Positions 3,001-63,100 of a stretch of DNA of 64,000 nt are shown one piece after another. Each line of letters opens with the position of its first letter. Position 1 is the stretch's first letter. The translations under genes and the position numbers were made by a program. Source of the stretch: Takakia lepidozioides (lineage: Eukaryota > Plantae > Bryophyta). The stretch is taken from assembly GCA_030704615.1 (NCBI GenBank), contig CM060733.1, forward strand, positions 10,416,001-10,480,000, in the 5' to 3' direction. A model generated the notes under the pieces. That model was given only the letters and a program-made list of their open reading frames with translations. It ran no database searches and was not told the DNA's origin.

Positions 3001-6000
3001 GCCAGTGCTACGCAAGAAACTTCCTGGTGGTGAAGCTGTCCACAAAGACAGCCCATCGTTGGAAAGAGCTGTGTGTGAGTGGTTGACTAGAGCTTTGGCA
3101 GGGCCACCCCTGGTTGCTTCCGAAGCAGGGCCAAAGCAGTCAGGTAAATATCCCCCCTGGCAACCCTGAAGAGATGAACTTTGTAATCTCTCACCCCCTC
3201 TCTCTTGTCCTGCTATGGCAAACAACATCTTATGAGTAGATTCTCTTATTGTTTCCTGTCGTTCTACGTTATCTCGGACGCTGGGGCACCCTCTGGATGT
3301 CATAGCGTTTCATTTCTTTCTCACTCATCGCAAAAGTGGGCTGGTTGGGTGGAGCAGAAGTAGAACAGTGGATGCAGGTGGCTGTGTCATGCTTTCCCTT
3401 GAAGCCATTTGGGGGTGCTGCAGCCATGGTAGCAGCTTCCACTGCTGAAGTTACCATTGAAGAGAGAGGCCTTCTTCTGAAGCTATTACAAAGGCAATTC
3501 TCGCGGCAAGCCGTGGCCTCATTTGCAGCTCAAGCTGCTGTTCATCGGTTGTCACCAGAACCGACCTTAAAAAACACAGAAAGGGAGCAAGCAGTGGAGC
3601 TGACGGTAGCCAAGTTGTTTGCTGCTTCGATTGCCTATTGCTGGCAGGATTTTGGGGTAGAGGAGTGGGGATTTGTATTAGCTCGGCTTCGCAAGTGGCT
3701 TGAAGCTGTAGTTCTTGAGGCCGAAGAGGTAACGGAGGCTGTGGTTGACTATATCAAGGCAGCTGAGCAGGTCAGAAAGGAGGAACCCTCAGCTGAGGAA
3801 GGGGAAGTTCACACAGGAAAACTTCCTCTGATGCCAGATTTAGAGCAGGCAATTGGCCAGCAAAGGAACAGCATGGTTGAGCTTTCAGCAACAGCTGTTG
3901 CTATTTTTTCTTTGCTGAGAGAGCTCAATACATTGGAGGGTGCAGCAGCTAGTGAAGCAATAGCCACCCTTGAGGAAGCCAACTGGGAAAGAGTGGAGGG
4001 GCATGCAATGGAAGATATTCTGCGGCTGCTTCTAGCGACTGGCCTTGCTGAATCAGCTGCTTCAAGCTCTATTGTTGGAGAACAGGTCACAGCTGTCATC
4101 TCCAATCGTCGGAAAGCGCAGGCAGGCTTGTGGGAAAACATTGCAGAGGTTGCTCTGAGTGCCACCGAGAGGGCCCGGGAAGCAGCTGTTCGATCCGCAG
4201 ACTTATGGGGGGTTGGAAAGGGGTCAATCAGTGGTCTTTATGCCCTCTTGTTCTCCTCTAATCCAATCGGGGCTTTGCAGTGGGTGGCTTACCAATTTCT
4301 GTCAACAGACCCTCTCCAGCAACTGGCAGTAACATGGGGAGTTGTAGCCTCGGAGCAGGCAGAATCTGAAGACAGCGAACAACAGGCGAGTATAGAAGAT
4401 ACATCTCCGGCAGCAATAGCCAGAATCCGCCCAGAGCTTGCCACTGTGCTCGAAACTCCTGCGGCTTTGCTTCTACAAAGCTCTCACACATCTCCCCTTC
4501 GGGTATGTTTCCTCAATGGGTGCAGATCTTAGGTTGCAAAAGGTCTTCAGTTTGAATTCGAACTAAATGCATCATAATAGGAGAAATTGAGCTATAGGCA
4601 TTTTATGTCATGGATAGTCCACACAATTTCACCACAATGTGCAACAGGTGCACTATTTACTGGGGTGGTCGCTTTTTTTGGCTCGTCTGCAAGCACTGTC
4701 GCCATCGTCCCCAGTCAGAGAAAGGCTGGTTCAATATACACAGGATACTGACACACCTTCCACTCTTCTCACTTGCCTCTTTCAATACATTCCTTTGGGG
4801 CAAAGCTCAGGTATTATTTTCAGTCTTGCACTTCTTATATCTCTTTCCTGTTCTCCACTTCTTTTGCTTTATCTGCCCCCTTGATTGCCCTTCTCTCTCA
4901 AAGGTTGAGAGACAGTGCACCCAGTCTCCTGTGTCACTTATATTGTAAGGTAGAGGGATATGATATGAAGGAATATGTTGATGTTCTACAGCTCAATTTG
5001 AACTTGCTTCAAGATGAACATATGTAAAACTTTTGATTGGTTATTAATGTTACCAAGTTTGTTCCTTTGTCTTCTTTCCTTTCTTTCTTACATTCTTTTC
5101 CGCTCAAACTGGGCGCGGGGTCAATGGCCACAAGGCTACGGCAAACAACGTCTTATGAGTACATTCTTTCTTACATTCTCTCGTTCTTTCTCACTGCAGA
5201 AGTTATAAAGTACCATTTCATTTCATTTTATTTCTCAACACTTCGGGCATGGCTGAGTCAAAAACTATGCACCAGTGCAGACATTCCTTATTTTATTCGA
5301 CCATCCAGTACCTTCACATGAAGTCAATGCAAGTAACCAGAGTTAAGACTTCCAGTTTCTCTGTGTTTGCCTTGTCATACCACCTGGTAGCAGTCTTATT
5401 GGGAGTACATTTCAAATCTCTGCAGGTGCTTTTGCTTCAAGGAAGCGAAATGCAACAACTGGAGCACAGCCAAGCAGTGCAGCAACATCTGCAACACGGG
5501 CTGCTGCGACTGGGTCAGTGGGGTTTGCTGTGGAGGGGTTGTGGCCAGTGAGGAGGGAGGAGTTGGTAGTGCTGGCAGGGGCCATATATGGTTTAGTGCT
5601 ACGGGTACTGCCTGCTTGTGTGCGTATTTGGTTCACTGGGTTGCGAGATAGATCTGCTGCTTCTGCAATTGAAGCTTTTACCACGACTTATTGCAGTCCC
5701 CAACTTTTAGCTGATGAGTTCTCTCAGGTATGAATTTCTCCCTTTCTTTATAGGCGGCATATGTTGTGAATGTTTGGCTTGCCATGTATATGTCTGCTGC
5801 ATGGTCTAGATTCATCTACGTTGCTCGTGTTAAAAAAAGGAAAGCCTTAATCTCCCTGAGATTTGGCCACTCATGCAGGACCAGGTGTTCTCTACAGTAC
5901 TGGACAGCAATAGCCATCTGTGTCATGCAGGAAAACTATTCGATTTTCATGGCAATGGTAAATCAAGTCCTAGGACGTTCATATATTCAAGCAAGGGTGT

Positions 6001-11475: not shown

Positions 11476-12837
11476 TCATAAGAAAGAGGAACCAAGATGA
11501 ACATTATGAAGTAAGTTATGGGCTATGGCATCTCGCGACTGCAAGCAGGAGCGAGAGGCGGAGCCCAGATCTGCAAGCATATCATCATCTATGATATCAA
11601 ACATAAGCTCTGAATCAAAGTCTTCATTGTGCATTTCACAGACATTGTGCAGCACACAGCATGCCCCCAGAACAGCAGGGAGCAATTGTAGCTTGACCTC
11701 TGTTCTACGCTGCAAGATTCGCCAGCGGCTTTTGAGGCGGCAAAAGGCACCTCTAGCCACTTGCAAGACCTCCATTACCTTCTCATTGAAGGCATGTTGT
11801 GCCCAAGTCAGGTTGTGTTGAACATAGGGAACTAATAGCCAATCTTGTAGCGGATATCCAGGGCCGCCCACTACCCACATCCCTTGCAGACTTCCACTCA
11901 TCCCTCTCTGATACAAGGCTGACTTCTCCAACACCCCCTCATCTGACATAGACCCCGGCCACCCAATGCACACATCGGTGAAGGACCCATGGACGTCCAC
12001 CATGCCTTGCAATGTGATGGAGTAAGAGGTCTTATGATTACGTTCTGTGTGCCGCTTGTTGAAGTAGGCCGCAACATTGATCTTGGGTGCAATTATGGGA
12101 ATATGAGTGGTATAGAGCGCACCCACGACACGACGCATTCCTGAAACACTCTCAAACTCTTCCATTACTGCCTGCAAACGCTCGCCCGCCGGCCATTGCA
12201 CATACTTAGGTAGGAGCACATCGTTGATTGCAGCACAAACCTCAAACACCATCTTGTGACAGGTGGAGATGCCAAGTCCGAAGCGCTTCGACACAAGACG
12301 AAGGGGTTCTCCCGTAGCTAGTCGCCAGATGCACACTGCCACTCTCTGTCTGACAGGAATGGCCGCCCTCAGCATAGTATCTTCCTTCTCCACAGCTCCA
12401 GCAAGCTGCTCACAGATCCTGTCAAATGTGGGGCGAGACATCCGGAATGCTCGATGGAACTCAATGTCTGGGAAACCTGGATGGTTGCATCGCGCCCACC
12501 ATGCCTGTGATCGATTCTTCACCCACAGCCGTCGCTGCACACTCTGCTGGGTGGCGACAGCGGCCCCCAGAGCAGCTGCAGCCACACGCGCACGCCTCAG
12601 ACGACATGTTTCAAGCACATCCAGGTCCGCATACACAGACTGCAATTGCCGATAGTATCTTTGCAGCCATGCCCGCCGGCGCGCATGCTGCTGCTGCCAT
12701 TGGAAGTACGCAAGGGCTTGCCGACGCTCTTCCCGCTGATACTGTCTGTTTTCCTCATCTAGCAACAAGAGCAACAGGAGCTCCCACTTCCAGCTCTTTC
12801 TGATACAACCATCAATTCTAGGCCGCATCATTGCCAC
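11476..12837 (-). CDS. ALP1-like / HARBI1-family (DDE_Tnp_4) domesticated PIF/Harbinger transposase-derived protein, intronless, 453 aa
   Basis: Motifs FRMSRPTFDRIC, IPVRQRVAVCIWRLATGEPLRLVSKRFGLGISTC, YTTHIPIIAPK..AAYFNKRHTERNHKTSYSITLQG, GWPGSMSD and ACCVLHNVCE. ORF intact; no TIRs seen. Confidence 0.9.
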   Translation of the reverse strand: MAMMRPRIDGCIRKSWKWELLLLLLLDEENRQYQREERRQALAYFQWQQQHARRRAWLQRYYRQLQSVYADLDVLETCRLRRARVAAAALGAAVATQQSVQRRLWVKNRSQAWWARCNHPGFPDIEFHRAFRMSRPTFDRICEQLAGAVEKEDTMLRAAIPVRQRVAVCIWRLATGEPLRLVSKRFGLGISTCHKMVFEVCAAINDVLLPKYVQWPAGERLQAVMEEFESVSGMRRVVGALYTTHIPIIAPKINVAAYFNKRHTERNHKTSYSITLQGMVDVHGSFTDVCIGWPGSMSDEGVLEKSALYQRGMSGSLQGMWVVGGPGYPLQDWLLVPYVQHNLTWAQHAFNEKVMEVLQVARGAFCRLKSRWRILQRRTEVKLQLLPAVLGACCVLHNVCEMHNEDFDSELMFDIIDDDMLADLGSASRSCLQSRDAIAHNLLHNVHLGSSFL

Positions 12838-16422: not shown

Positions 16423-17728
16423 TTAGCTTGTGAGAAACACCTTTCCTCCTCGACCAACTTCCTCCGATTTTTTAATGGCAGTTTTGAAGTCAGCAAGATC
16501 AAACTTTTCTCCTGCAAGAGGCTGAATAATCTTAGCATCCAGGAGCTTGAAGGCCTCGTCACTGAAAGTCTGACGCTTCTCTTCATTGTCCAAGTGATTG
16601 TAGAGAATCCATCCTGTCAGCTGAACTTCCCTCATTAGGTCCATGATGCGTACTGCCGCATTGTAACTTGATAACCCTCCATACACGAGAACCCGACCTC
16701 CGAATCTCACACTTGCACACACCTCCTTGGTGAGCTCCCCAGCAACAGCATCCAGAGCTCCATACGCCAACCTATCCCCTGTGATCTCTTTCACCCTCGC
16801 CACCACATTTTCATCACTGGAGCTAATGACCTCATCTGCACCCAGAGCCTTCAGCTCCTCCTTTTGCTCGCTGCGGCGAACAATGTTGATTGTCTTGATG
16901 CCCCAGTGCTTGGCCAGTTGTATCACCTGCCTGCCAAGCACAGAACCAGCAGCAGTTTGCAACACGTACTCCCCTTTAGGAACAGCAAGATCGTGCAGCA
17001 TTCCGTAGACCGTCCACGGATTGATCACAAACTGGGCAGCCGTCTCATCTGGGATTGAGTCTGGGACCGGCCATACCATTTCCTGTCTAACAGAAACGTA
17101 CTGCTGCCATGATCCCTCTCCCTCCCTCACGATTTCCCACATGAAGGGCACCACTCTTTGCCCGGGCTTCACCTTCGTCACTCCCTCCCCGACCTACACG
17201 TCCAAAACCGGAACAGAATTTAATATGATCGGTGCAAAAGAGTGTACAAATCTTCCAAATTCTGAAGGTAGTCATGCATAGATGCATCTGAACAAGGACC
17301 GAAAAGGAGATTTGGCAATAGCAACGAGACATACAAATCAGGCGAATACCTAGACCGATCATAATGGGGGATAATACCAAGTAGAGGGAGATGTTCAGTA
17401 GAAGCTTGCATCGCTTGCCCTCAGAGAAGATACCCGGATGTCTTCTGGTGAAGCCTTAAGGTGTCTAAACCAATCCATCTCAATTGGACATGATGCTTAC
17501 CGCATGGACAACGCCGACGCCTTCAGAGCCTGGAGTCGTGGACGCATTCAACTTTCGTATGACCCTCCCTGTCCGAATGCTGATAAGGTCTGTGGGATTG
17601 ATAGGGCGCAATGTGATATGCACCACCACCTGCCCTGCCTCGGCCCGGGGCAATGCCTTCGTGACTAATGTCAGCGCTCCCTCGGGATCATTCTCATTGA
17701 AGCTTTCCTGTACAACAGCTCTGGACAT
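16423..17728 (-). CDS. MDR-superfamily NAD(P)H oxidoreductase (enoyl-thioester reductase / quinone oxidoreductase-like), copy A, 2 exons, 332 aa
   Basis: Exon 1 17728-17501, GT-AG intron, exon 2 17193-16423. Motifs RPINPTDL, PGSEGVG, VINPWTVYGM, LQTAAGSVLGRQVIQLAK and GGKVFL. Lacks the GHE and Cys zinc ligands of classical ADHs. Confidence 0.88.
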
Positions 17729-37466: not shown

Positions 37467-40400
37467 CTACCAGTAATCCCCACAAGAACATACCCCATCT
37501 TGGAAGTGGTGGAAACGGTTAGCATCTCGTACAATAACTGTTCGCCTAACGATCTTTGAGATGAACTTGACCGCAGTGTGGCAGTCACCACACACCCGAA
37601 GGTTTTTGATAACACGGATAGCCGTCTCAGGGGGTGTGTGGATGAGTCCGAATGCAATGGCCAGTTTCTCGCTGTGGTAGCAAAGAGAAATTTCCTTCTG
37701 CTCCTCTTCCAAATCGTGCAGTACAAACTGTGTGTCAGGCACATACCCCACCTCCATCATTTGCCCATACAATCTCTTCAGCTCAGCATGGATTTCTTTA
37801 ATTTGTGGATGAGATTTGTCCTCTACGACAAACGTATGCACCTGGTTCTTGACCACAATGGAGCTGTGCCCTGGCTCCATTCTGACACCTCTGTCCTCCA
37901 TCATGTTTCTCACTTTGACTTTCTCGTCCCACCTGCCAGCTGCAGCATAGATGTTCGATAGCGGCACATAAGCTGCAGGGTGCTGTTGACCTTGGTCAAG
38001 AATGCATTTTGCCGCACGTTCTGCTAACTTCACATCACCATGAAGCCTGCAGGCACCAAGCAAGGCCCGCCATACAGCTATATCTGGTTTGATTGGCATT
38101 GTGTTAATCAAATCCTCTGCTTCATGCAATCGCCCTGCACGGCCAAGAAGGTCCACCATGCAGCCAAAATGCTCCACTGTAGGATTGAGGCCATGATCTC
38201 GACTCATCGAATCAAAGTAGTGACGCCCTTCATCCACTAGACCCACATGACTACACGCAAAGAGAACAGACATAAAGGTCACACCGTTCGGATTCAAATT
38301 TTCTTGTTGCATTTGTTGAAATAGTTGCAGGGCTTCCCTACCACACCCATGCTGAGCACATCCTGCAATCATAGCATTCCATGATACCACATCTCGTTCA
38401 GCCATATTATGGAACACTTGGCGTGCATCCTTCATGCTCCCACATTTCGTGTACATGTCAACAAGAGCAGTATTCACAATAATCTCTGATACAATTCCAG
38501 ATTTGATGATGTCAGCATGGACATTGTTGCCCTTTTCCAGGGCCCCTAAGCAGGCACACACATGAAGAATGCAGGAAAATGTGACCCTGTCGGGTATCAC
38601 ACCTTCCCGTTGCATTTGCTCATATGTTGTGAAAACCTCCCCACCACCCCCATGTTGAGCATATCCCCCAATCATGGCATTCCATGTGACCACATCCCGT
38701 TTACGCATACTGTTGAAGACTTGTTGTGCATCCTCCATGCTCCCACATTTGGCATACATATCAACAAGGCTATTTTCCAGATTAATGTATGATGTTATTC
38801 CAGCTTTGATGATGTCATAATGAACCTCTTTGCCTTTTTCCAGGCTGTTTAGGCTGGCACACGCATTGAGTACAGAAAGAAATGTCACTTTGTTGGGTGC
38901 CACCTGTTCCTGTTGCATTTTCTCGTAGATTATGAAAGCTTCCCTACCACACCCACTATGAGCATACCCTGTAATCATGGAACTCCATGAAACCACGTCT
39001 CGTGTAACCATATTGTCAAACACCTGATGTGCATCCTTCATGCTCCCGCATTTGGCATACATGTCCACGAGGCTATTCTCCAAATTGATATATGAGACAA
39101 CTCCAGCTTTGATGATGTCAGCATGGACCTTTTTACCCTTTTCCAGGGCTCCTAAGCCGGCACACACATTCAGAATGCAAGTGAATGTGACACTGTCGGG
39201 CGTAACCCCTTCATGGTGCATTTGCTCATAGATTTTCAAAGCCTCCCTACCACACCCATGTTGAACATATCCTGTAATCATAATATTCCATGAGACCACA
39301 TCTTGTTTAGCCATATTGTCAAACACTTGACAGGCAACATCCATGCTCCCGCATTTGGCATACATGTCAACGAGGCTATTCTCCAAATTAACATATGGAG
39401 CAATTCCAGCTTTGACAATGTCAGCATGGACCTCTTTCCCCTTTTCCAGGGCTCCTAGGTTGGCACACACATTAAGAACACAAGTGAATGTGACCCTGTC
39501 ACGCATCACCCCTTCCTTCTGCATTTGCTCATAAATTCTGACAGCCTCCCAACCACACCCATGCTGAGCATATCCTGCGATGATGGTATTCCATGAGACC
39601 ACATCTCGTCTAGCCATACTGTCAAATACTTGACGGGCATCCTTCATGCTCCCACATTTGGCATACATGTCAACAAGAGCAGTGTCCAAAACTATATCTG
39701 ACATAATTCCAGATTTCATGATGTCACCATGGATCTCTTTGGCTTTTTCCACAGCTCCTACACTGGCACATGCATTGACAACACAAATGAATGTGACTTT
39801 GTTGGGGATTATGCCTTCCCGTTGCATTTGATCATAGATATTGAAAGCCTCCACACCACACCCGTGGTGAGCATATCCTGCGATCATGGCACTCCATGAG
39901 ACCACATCTCTTTTAGCCATATTGTCAAACACTTGGCGTGCATCCTTCATGCTCCCGCTTTTGGCGTACATGTTGACAAGAGATGTTTCCAAAATTATCT
40001 CTGATGCAATTCCAGCTTTCATGATGTCAGAATGGACCTCGTTGCCTTTTTCCAGGGCTCCTAGGCTAGCACACACATTGAGAATGCAAGTGAATGTGAC
40101 ACTGTCGGGCCTCACCCCTTCCTGTTGCATTTGCTCATAGATCTTCAAAGCCTTCTCAGCAAGCCCATGCTTAGCATATCCTGCCATCATCGTAGTCCAT
40201 GTAAACATATCTCTTTCGGGCATTTTGTCAAACACACGGCGTGCATCCACCACACTCCCACACTTGGCATACATGTTGACAAGGGTGTTCAGTAGAAAGA
40301 TGTTGGGCTTAAATCCACTGTGGATAATGTGGGCATGCACCTGCCTTCCCTTTGGTAGGTCTTTCATCTTAATGCACTCCTGCAAGAGACAGACATACAG

Positions 40401-40622
40401 TTTGGAGTCGGCCTGAATGCCTTGCTGGTTCAAAATGTACAATGCATCTTGTAGTCGACCTCTCTTACATAGCGTCCTCATGTCCCCACAGGTGCCAGAG
40501 GAATTATTGTTGACTCCCTCTCTCAGTCCTCTTCCAAAAGCGGTGGTGATGTTGGGGGTACCACCCCTGCCGCCACCAGTCTCATGTCCAACAACCAACT
40601 CTGTCTGATTCAACCTTGCCAT
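37467..40622 (-). CDS. PLS-class PPR protein with E1-E2-DYW domains (organellar C-to-U RNA editing factor), 1051 aa
   Basis: 23 tandem L/S/P motifs ending P2-L2-S2, then E1, E2, a PG box (EPGHSSI), deaminase zinc ligands HSEKLA and CGDCH, and terminal CSCGDYW. Confidence 0.96.
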
Positions 40623-60188: not shown

Positions 60189-63100
60189 TCAACCGACGAG
60201 TACCCACGTGGCGTAGCTGGGAACGCCATTGTAATTAGCAAACAGCATGTAGTAACCCGGTGGCGCAATTACATTACTCGGAGGCGATGTGGCGCTTATT
60301 GAATACTGCCCAGCTGTAGCAGCCGCGGTTGGGGCTGATACTGCCAGATTCAAGAGCCTTTGTCCCTGCAAGAACATGAATGTCGAACGAAATATATATG
60401 AGAGTTCGAACACAAACCAGGGTTTTCTTACAAGCAACTCCGTGTTCAATCAACAACTTTGGTACGCTTCTAGAGACCTCTCAGATTGTCGGCATTTAAC
60501 TCTCGGGAGCTAGCCAATGCTTCGAGGGCTAATTTTAAGTCCAGGAAGCTCGAGAAAGCTGCCCGACCCTCGTCCTCAATTATCAAAGCACGGGTGGGCT
60601 TTATATATGTCCCTCCTACACGATCAGCTCGAAACCCCAAGCCTAACATTTTCCCCCACTTGTCACATCCAACCCAGTAAAGCCCCGTGACTTAGATCTA
60701 GCCTTATGGTGCCCAACATCTACAAGGAGAAAATGAGAGACTGCAAACCGTCAGTTCAGATCAGTTGCTGAGCAACGAACAACTGAAAGCCCACGAGTGA
60801 GTATATAAACTACTACAAGGTGATCTAATTTTCGAGATGCAAAGAAACGCAATTTTGGAAACCTCAAGCGTGGATGGAAGAGGAGCCAGACAGCCACAGA
60901 ACATACCTGAGCATACGAGTGAGTGGTGTAAGGAGCACTGATGAGATTGAGCTCTATGTTGCCAGCGGGCACTTCGGGCAGGCTAACAGTGAGAGTGAAG
61001 GCAGCGCCATAGCCCAGAGTGTTGGGAGCATCTCCAGTGAAGCTGGGGCCCGCTTGGCTCAAGTAGGGAGGCGAGAACGCCTCGATCCTCAGCTCGGTGG
61101 GGAGGTCGCCGGTAAAGGTGTAGAACTGGTGTGTGTTACTTCCGGCGACTAGAATCCGAGCATCGGCAAGCAGATTCGCCGTGGAATGGTACACCCGGGG
61201 AATGTTGGTGCCGGCCAGCGTCTCGAAGCGGGACCCGGCGGCATTATCCGGGTGGTACAACACCGGGGTCAGCACCGGGTTGCTGGCTTGCCCCCATCCC
61301 TGCGACCCGGCCGCGGCGCCGTTGATGATGAGGACGTCGCGGGTGGGCAACAGAACCATGTCGCCCATGGTCCGCGGCATGGGCATATCCTCCATGGCCC
61401 ATCCGGGATTCGCCGCCAACGGAGAGATCCGTCCGCACGACTGAAGCGCCGTCGTCGTCGTGGCGAAGGCGGCGAAGACGCCCGCCTGCGCTCCCCCGCA
61501 GACCACGACTTCCGCCGACGAGAATCCGTCCGCCGCCGTCAACGGAAGCATGACGGAGCTTCCGGCGCTCGGGTAGTTCCGGGGCCCCCCTTGAAGCGTC
61601 GGGAGGTTGGCTACGACCGTGTTGGACGTCCAGTCGAACAGGACGGAATCCTGGTTGGCGAAGATGAACAGCTGGTTGTTGGGCAGCAGATGAACGTAGG
61701 GGTAGTAGTTGTCGTTCTGTGCGTCGTTCGTCTGTACATCCATTTAACCCAGTGAGTCACCTCGATGAACAGGATTCATCCCTTGGATGTATTTTTCCCG
61801 GAAGCTGCTTCAAACTGACAGGGAGTAAATGCCTTGACATTAGGGACATGCAAGCCCTAATTTTGAGGGAGAGGGAGGGAGGGATTCCCGACGGGAGTGA
61901 ACAGCGCACGCACGACTACGTACGTGCCACCTAATATGTCACATTTCAGTGTCTGGTTTGCAGTCCAGTCTGACTCATGTGCACATACGAGCTGGGTCCC
62001 GCAGGCAGAGATAGGCAGGGGGGCAGATGTGTCTGCAGGAGCTACAGTGGAGCTCTGACAGTACCGCAAGGATTAGTTGGGGTGCAAGAGATGGGGAGGG
62101 AGGTTAGGCAGGGAGAGAGAGAGAGAAGACAACTTTTCCTCGGTGGTGGAAGTTGTGGACCCACAGCAAACCGTTTGTCGTCGAAAGAACAGCCAGCAGA
62201 CAGTGAGCGAAGGAGCTGGGTCTGGGAAGTGAAAGATGTACTCAAGGACAGAATAGATGGGCTGTAAAGATGAGGAGAGGGAGAGAGTGTAACTACAGAG
62301 GGACGAGTTATTGCACAACTCGAGCATGGAGATGATTTGTAACCCATTTGTAATGAGAGTAAGAGAAAAGAGAGGAAGTTGAACGGCCTGTGAGAGAGAG
62401 AGAGAGAGGTCAGGACTAGGACGAAGGAGAGAATAGAACTTGTACCGCTGAAAGAAGAGGTAAAGTGGTCTGGCCCCCTCCATTCGCAGGAACATATTCG
62501 ACGGTGAATACACCGCGCCCTCCGACGACAATTTGTTGACCATTTGGAAGCTGTTGATTGCTGGCATACCACCGACCCGCTTGCAATGGCGTGCCTGTCT
62601 CAACCCAATCGCAGTTGCCATCTGATGCGCAAGGCTCGAAAGTCCGAATCTGTACCGGGCAAGCGATTACATTGTACATACAGCATTAAATTCAAAGTCG
62701 AAAGAACATTAAAGCAACAATTTCACCTCATCCACTCAAGGTCCTATCCTATATGAGATTACGTCCAGTGGAGGCACAGAAGGCCATGAAGAAGAAGAGA
62801 GTGACGGAAGATAATTTAATTCCTTGGAAAGCCTCAAGTACTTCTATATGTGTCTAAACAACCAAGCTGAAGATCGCTGGGAAGAGAAGGAAGGGAGAGA
62901 GAAAGGAATCACCTTCGCATTTCCATCTGCGTCTCCGCCTGTTTGCACGAGAGTTCCATCATTAGCAAACTGCCCTGACGAACACCAAGTGTCTGTGAAG
63001 ATGAACAATGGCCTGATATTGTTTGAACCAGGTGTATAAATGGCAGAATGCGCTGTGCAATCATGCGTGGACGCCTGATGAATTTAACAGCCATGTACAT

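Follow-up and report, generated by a model that had tools for sequence, protein, structure and literature searches.

To our knowledge, pairs of editing factor and editing site are known for few plants, with almost none from the heavily editing, early-diverging lineages. The genome of the moss Takakia lepidozioides (325 Mb) has been reported to hold 2016 pentatricopeptide repeat (PPR) genes, alongside massive C-to-U editing. Within the window, which is the whole 64,000-nt stretch of contig CM060733.1 analyzed here, one PPR gene occupies positions 37467-40622 of the minus strand, and the question it raises is which cytidine its product acts on. Reading the target from the recognition code of the protein, and comparing DNA with RNA at the predicted position, we propose that the gene probably encodes a site-specific plastid C-to-U editing factor for nucleotide (nt) 1742 of psaB.

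In the ORF listing of the window the gene is a single intact frame of 1051 aa, and it represents a complete intronless CDS (37467-40622, minus strand, as for all features of the gene below; 1051 codons plus stop) for a PLS-E1-E2-E+-DYW pentatricopeptide repeat protein. Five codons before its ATG there is an in-frame stop. Pfam matches comprise PPR, PPR_1, PPR_2, PPR_3, E_motif (2e-12), Eplus_motif (2.9e-08) and DYW_deaminase (2.9e-44). According to the motif layout, the N-terminal 72 residues (40407-40622) consist of a Gly/Arg/Thr-rich leader of ~45 aa and a degenerate P-like motif; the first 45 residues, three of them acidic, could possibly act as an organelle presequence, and do not resemble an obvious transit peptide. 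The RNA-reading array follows (aa 73-847; 38082-40406), in which 23 PLS motifs are called, namely an L-S pair and six tandem P-L-S triplets of 101 aa each, closing with P2-L2-S2. The P motifs begin at aa 139, 240, 341, 442, 543, 644 and 745, spaced exactly 101 aa apart, which corresponds to P35-L35-S31. An independent HMM-based motif caller returned the same gapless chain, L-S-(P-L-S)x6-P2-L2-S2-E1. In the terminal triplet (aa 745-847; 38082-38390), P2 carries the residue pair NN and faces position -6, L2 carries MT and faces -5, and S2 carries GD and faces -4, counted from the edited C.

The E1 and E2 motifs (aa 848-914; 37881-38081) were delimited by the Pfam E_motif and by alignment to the synthetic PPR-DYW protein 9KFX, and the E+/DYW cytidine deaminase domain (aa 915-1051; 37470-37880) by Pfam and the same alignment. 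The segment from E1 through the C-terminus (aa 849-1051) can be aligned along its whole length to 9KFX (E=1e-97) and to the OTP86 DYW domain 7O4E (4e-45). Alignment and motif comparison place the predicted catalytic His-Ser-Glu, comprising a zinc ligand and the proton shuttle, at aa 983-985 (37668-37676), and the CGDCH zinc-binding motif at aa 1011-1015 (37578-37592). Together with HHF and the terminal CSCGDYW, both motifs are intact. Compared with the synthetic consensus PPR-DYW (PDB 9KFX/9KFY; PMC13324415) and the OTP86 DYW domain (PDB 7O4E), with which it has HSE, CxDCH, HHF and CSCGDYW in common, the Takakia protein is a natural one whose PLS array and code are its own, and it carries PGHSSIV in place of PGCSWIE. 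This PG box (aa 915-925) keeps Pro-Gly and changes W to S and E to V. Among 74 homologues with a detectable PG box, the consensus PGCSWIE is present in 30, and the PGHSSIV variant only in this protein (1/74). The PG-box residues of PPR56 that were experimentally examined were Pro and Gly. A reverse (U-to-C) deaminase of the KPAxA-type DYW variant was rejected: the HSE...CSCGDYW signature is canonical, and at each of the 13 DNA/RNA discordances found in psaB the DNA has C and the RNA has T. Judged by all sequence-level criteria, the protein is a PLS-class, DYW-type PPR editing factor.

The atypical PG box, together with the report that most of the Takakia PPR genes occur in duplicated pairs, lends some color to the possibility that the psaB element is recognized by a redundant or decaying paralogue, the edit itself being made by another PPR-DYW protein. 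We consider this unlikely: the ORF runs uninterrupted through 1051 codons and retains every catalytic motif, and the homologue protein search, whose scope was proteins from outside the proteome of this genome, returned neither a close paralogue nor an orthologue with a similar code, the best identities being 45-57% (Funaria PPR77, among the homologues listed, is 46% identical). No match to the exact protein was found in the index of contig-encoded proteins.

From N to C, the residue 5/last pairs of the 14 S and P motifs are ND, TD, TD, SN, TD, ND, ND, ND, ND, SN, ND, ND, TD and NN, with an L motif following every S-P pair, and then come L2 (MT), S2 (GD), E1 and E2. In the established code, T or S with D specifies G, T or S with N specifies A, N with D prefers U over C, N with N accepts C or U, and S2 lies opposite position -4 from the edited C. 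The S2 pair GD was treated as uninformative, which left 14 informative motifs to be scored; their predicted bases are U G. G A. G U. U U. U A. U U. G Y. We counted a match as preferred where the favored base is present, and as tolerant where C is also allowed under ND. The initial annotation of this locus, made from the DNA letters, had listed the same pairs and derived the pattern 5'-n UGn GAn GUn UUn UAn UUn GYn nnn nC; upon re-derivation the pairs were identical, including the spacing of the L motifs, and the arithmetic of the pattern was correct with S2 at -4. Its further statements that the L motifs fall on wobble positions and the edited C on a second codon position both hold in the psaB frame, where the L motifs land on third codon positions.

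The same annotation had matched the pattern to a conserved PsaB segment just after the FX cysteine ligand. A degenerate pattern collected 119 psaB loci from metagenome contigs, and this segment is exact in 113 of them, with close variants in the remainder. The surrounding plastid DNA, 964 kb from other species, was scanned on both strands. The psaB element alone reaches at least 12 preferred or 14 tolerant matches, against a background maximum of 11 (964 kb x 2 strands), and it fits the code at 12-13/14 in nearly all 119 loci. For the Takakia element itself, 12 motifs face the preferred base in unedited RNA and 13 after a neighboring edit at -9, with a tolerant score of 14/14. The earlier count of 13/14 preferred, conditional on a UUR codon for Leu, is right for edited RNA; in DNA the Leu codon is TCG and the count is 12, the ND motif at -9 facing C before the neighboring edit (TCG to TTG) and U after it.

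The specificity of this match was also examined from the opposite side. When 61 homologous PLS proteins of other plants, most of them with a DYW domain, were scored against the psaB element, the best matched 11/15 informative motifs and the mean was 45%, compared to 14/14 for the Takakia protein in this reverse control. Within the psaB stretch compared below, the other 12 editing sites score 1-8 preferred and 2-8 tolerant, and any other C at most 11 tolerant. No place with a better fit emerged, either in 964 kb of plastid DNA of other species or among the 12 other sites of the stretch. The psaA equivalent, which the initial annotation had judged a much worse fit, reaches 8-9/14 and was rejected as the target. 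The base at -1 of psaB nt 1742 is U.

We then asked what psaB, which has no copy in the 64-kb window, carries at the predicted codon. Contigs of four runs were aligned to a moss-like psaB reference (L058:4240-4911, 672 nt), in which the predicted base is L058 4451. The DNA run with the best coverage of the nuclear gene is X1, X5 and X6 are RNA-type assemblies, and no contig of X7 aligned to L058:4240-4911. The X1 contigs over psaB have a depth of ~8000 and are therefore read as plastome. One of them, record 4, aligns up to L058 4441 and continues with 13 unaligned letters, CGGCGGTTTCTCG, whose register is fixed by G at 4443 and G at 4446, substitutions common to all runs. Accordingly, the X1 DNA at L058:4441-4454 reads TCG GCG GTT TCT CG, i.e., Ser-Ala-Val-Ser-Arg, where the PsaB norm is Leu-Ala-Val-Phe-Trp. 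Record 5, which shares an overlap of exactly 30 nt (k-1) with record 4, must carry the same letters. Codon 581 of the genomic psaB is therefore still Ser, as the initial annotation required, since the plastome-depth DNA contig reads TCT and not UUY. A Ser codon at position 581 was found neither in the metagenome, prokaryote-genome and viral collections nor in the 119 fetched loci, which makes the site probably lineage-specific; the unedited PsaB of the source species was absent from the PsaB protein search, in which the matches were mostly from angiosperms.

X5 and X6 are taken as RNA because their psaB is edited. They contain 37% and 14%, respectively, of the sampled words of the PPR gene, which hints at its transcription. 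Both have T at all ten listed positions where X1 has C, and X5 record 9 and X6 record 13, which span L058 4451, show no difference from TTT there among the differences listed. In total, 30 listed substitutions are common to X1, X5 and X6, and all of them are synonymous. By contrast, the 13 sites with C in DNA, ten listed and three from the loose end of record 4, are all nonsynonymous, and each edit restores a conserved residue: psaB eU1733SL, 1742SF, 1744RW, 1775SF, 1777HY, 1780RW, 1786RW, 1982SF, 2138SF, 2140PS, 2156SF, 2161HY and 2171SF. The psaB mRNA thus undergoes heavy C-to-U editing.

For nt 1742 itself, part of the case comes from the bookkeeping of mismatch totals. X5 record 9 has 14 mismatches (12 listed plus 2), X5 record 10 has 18 (14 plus 4) and X6 record 13 has 38 (30 plus 5 plus 3). 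Among the six differences beyond those listed, two T>C also apply to X5 and X6 by the per-run counts, which leaves a small probability for a C retained at 1742, and the differences beyond those listed fit best at ~4500-4816, where psaA-like contigs co-align. Differences confined to X1 were listed only where the nearest contig end was at least 32 letters away; positions 4442, 4451 and 4453 are absent from that list because they lie 17, 26 and 28 letters from the end. At most two additional differences confined to the DNA may fall within L058:4380-4441, and any of them inside the footprint would face an ND or an L motif and be tolerated. Taken together, the RNA very probably reads U at psaB nt 1742. 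The editing that the initial annotation anticipated is supported by the match of X5 and X6 to TTT at 4451 among the listed differences and by T at ten other C sites, with the state at 1742 partly deduced.

These data bear on how the pieces would work together. The PLS array would dock on psaB mRNA from nt -25 to -4, one motif per nucleotide, in such a way that bases one and two of each of the seven consecutive codons W-D-A-F-Y-L-A (nt -25 to -6) are read by S and P motifs, with an L motif over every wobble base. With S2 at -4, E1 and E2 would bridge the gap to the target, and the zinc-dependent DYW deaminase would convert C to U at the middle base of codon 581, psaB nt 1742 (psaBeU1742SF). The edit would restore the universally conserved Phe581, which lies 13 residues past the second Cys of the FX motif CDGPGRGGTC, in the helix that follows this motif. 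Of the original proposal that the protein edits this Ser codon to Phe, the site is supported by the code fit, the genomic Ser and the RNA data; it is from the code that we infer the rest, namely that the protein would be imported into plastids, bind the psaB element and be the responsible enzyme.

PPR editing factors often target several sites, and it might be argued that the true target lies elsewhere, for instance in mitochondria, the psaB fit being coincidental. This appears improbable. The ~1 Mb of plastid DNA of other species contains no 14/14 tolerant fit outside the psaB element, and by our own estimate from base frequencies such a fit is expected at ~4e-7 per pyrimidine; moreover, the psaB fit ends precisely on a genuine edited C with the codon phase kept. 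Still less probable is that the protein binds the psaB element for a non-editing role in RNA stabilization or translation, which is general among PPR proteins, considering that E1, E2 and DYW are complete with conserved catalytic residues and that the standard S2-at--4 register brings the deaminase to an edited C. The assignment of the protein to the editing of nt 1742 draws its weight from the code match. With 13 editing sites in 672 nt of psaB and ~6/16 Phe codons being Ser in DNA, such dense Ser-to-Phe editing makes a site at the predicted codon a roughly one-in-three coincidence that adds only a factor of ~3; the existence of the site alone is weak evidence.

The target is one of three C-to-U sites within 12 nt (nt 1733-1744, L058:4441-4455), which cause S578L, S581F and R582W. 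The nt 1733 site lies inside the footprint of the factor, under the ND motif at -9, and nt 1744 (CGG to TGG) lies at +2. Editing at either position by this protein was rejected, with scores of 4/14 at -9 and 6/14 at +2, so that other factors are needed there. It is conceivable, if rather speculative, that the three edits are coupled: editing at -9 first would raise the number of preferred bases from 12 to 13 and might impose a sequence on the edits. On a broader view, the factor would read only first and second codon bases of the invariant peptide W-D-A-F-Y-L-A, and a docking site near-fixed in this way from algae to angiosperms could make a T-to-C mutation at nt 1742 tolerable. Further downstream, four edits also fall within 12 nt (nt 1775-1786, L058:4484-4495) and change S-H-R-H-R to F-Y-W-H-W.

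Several other plastids show related patterns. A moss-like metagenome psaB (L101) has CAT (His) at the Tyr577 codon inside WDAFYLAVF and two more TCY codons at conserved Phe positions; all three are correctable by C-to-U, so another moss-like plant would edit inside the element. The PsaB of Encalypta ciliata (P0148) reads ...AFYLAVFRML..., with Arg at the conserved Trp582, and the +2 site (eU1744RW) thus seems to exist in another moss. In the GC-richer psaB loci L001, L014 and L118, the start codon is ACG, and more TCA and TCT codons stand at conserved Leu and Phe positions; these loci probably come from fern-like plastids that edit the start codon.

The Takakia protein shares the moss PLS-E1-E2-DYW architecture with the DYW factors of Physcomitrium patens (PPR56, PPR65, PPR77, PPR78 and others), which also read bases by residues 5/last of their P and S motifs and deaminate a C located 4 nt 3' of the base that S2 faces. 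PPR56 edits by itself in E. coli (PMC10482289). Compared to these factors, the Takakia protein has a different predicted target (plastid psaB nt 1742) and an atypical PG box, and it belongs to a heavily editing moss, whereas P. patens has 13 sites. For psaB, sites were reported from Pellia endiviifolia (psaBeU764PL, eU782SF and eU1595PL; PMC3542565); these C-to-U edits likewise restore conserved PsaB residues, and none is at nt 1742. The 'psaBeU' site labels in the literature were found for Pellia only, and the scope of Yura 2008 was the rps4-psbE region and the psbB operon, with psaB outside it (PMC2575889). We found no published report of the nt 1742 site or of this pairing in a search whose reach ended short of the Takakia plastome editing paper.

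The result reveals no new mechanism. A target predicted purely from a nuclear gene proved to be a real photosystem I editing site, and the negative controls were clean, which indicates that the precision of the 5/last code suffices for long PLS arrays in a heavily editing species; this ORF with its 45-nt psaB target makes a concrete pair for the E. coli editing assay.

Elsewhere in the window, a 453-aa ORF (11476-12837, minus strand) has a DDE_Tnp_4 transposase domain of PIF/Harbinger type (6.6e-32). Two further minus-strand ORFs, at 16423-17181 and 60751-61743, have zinc-binding dehydrogenase and glyoxal-oxidase domains; they probably represent exons belonging to ordinary nuclear genes on either side of the PPR gene.
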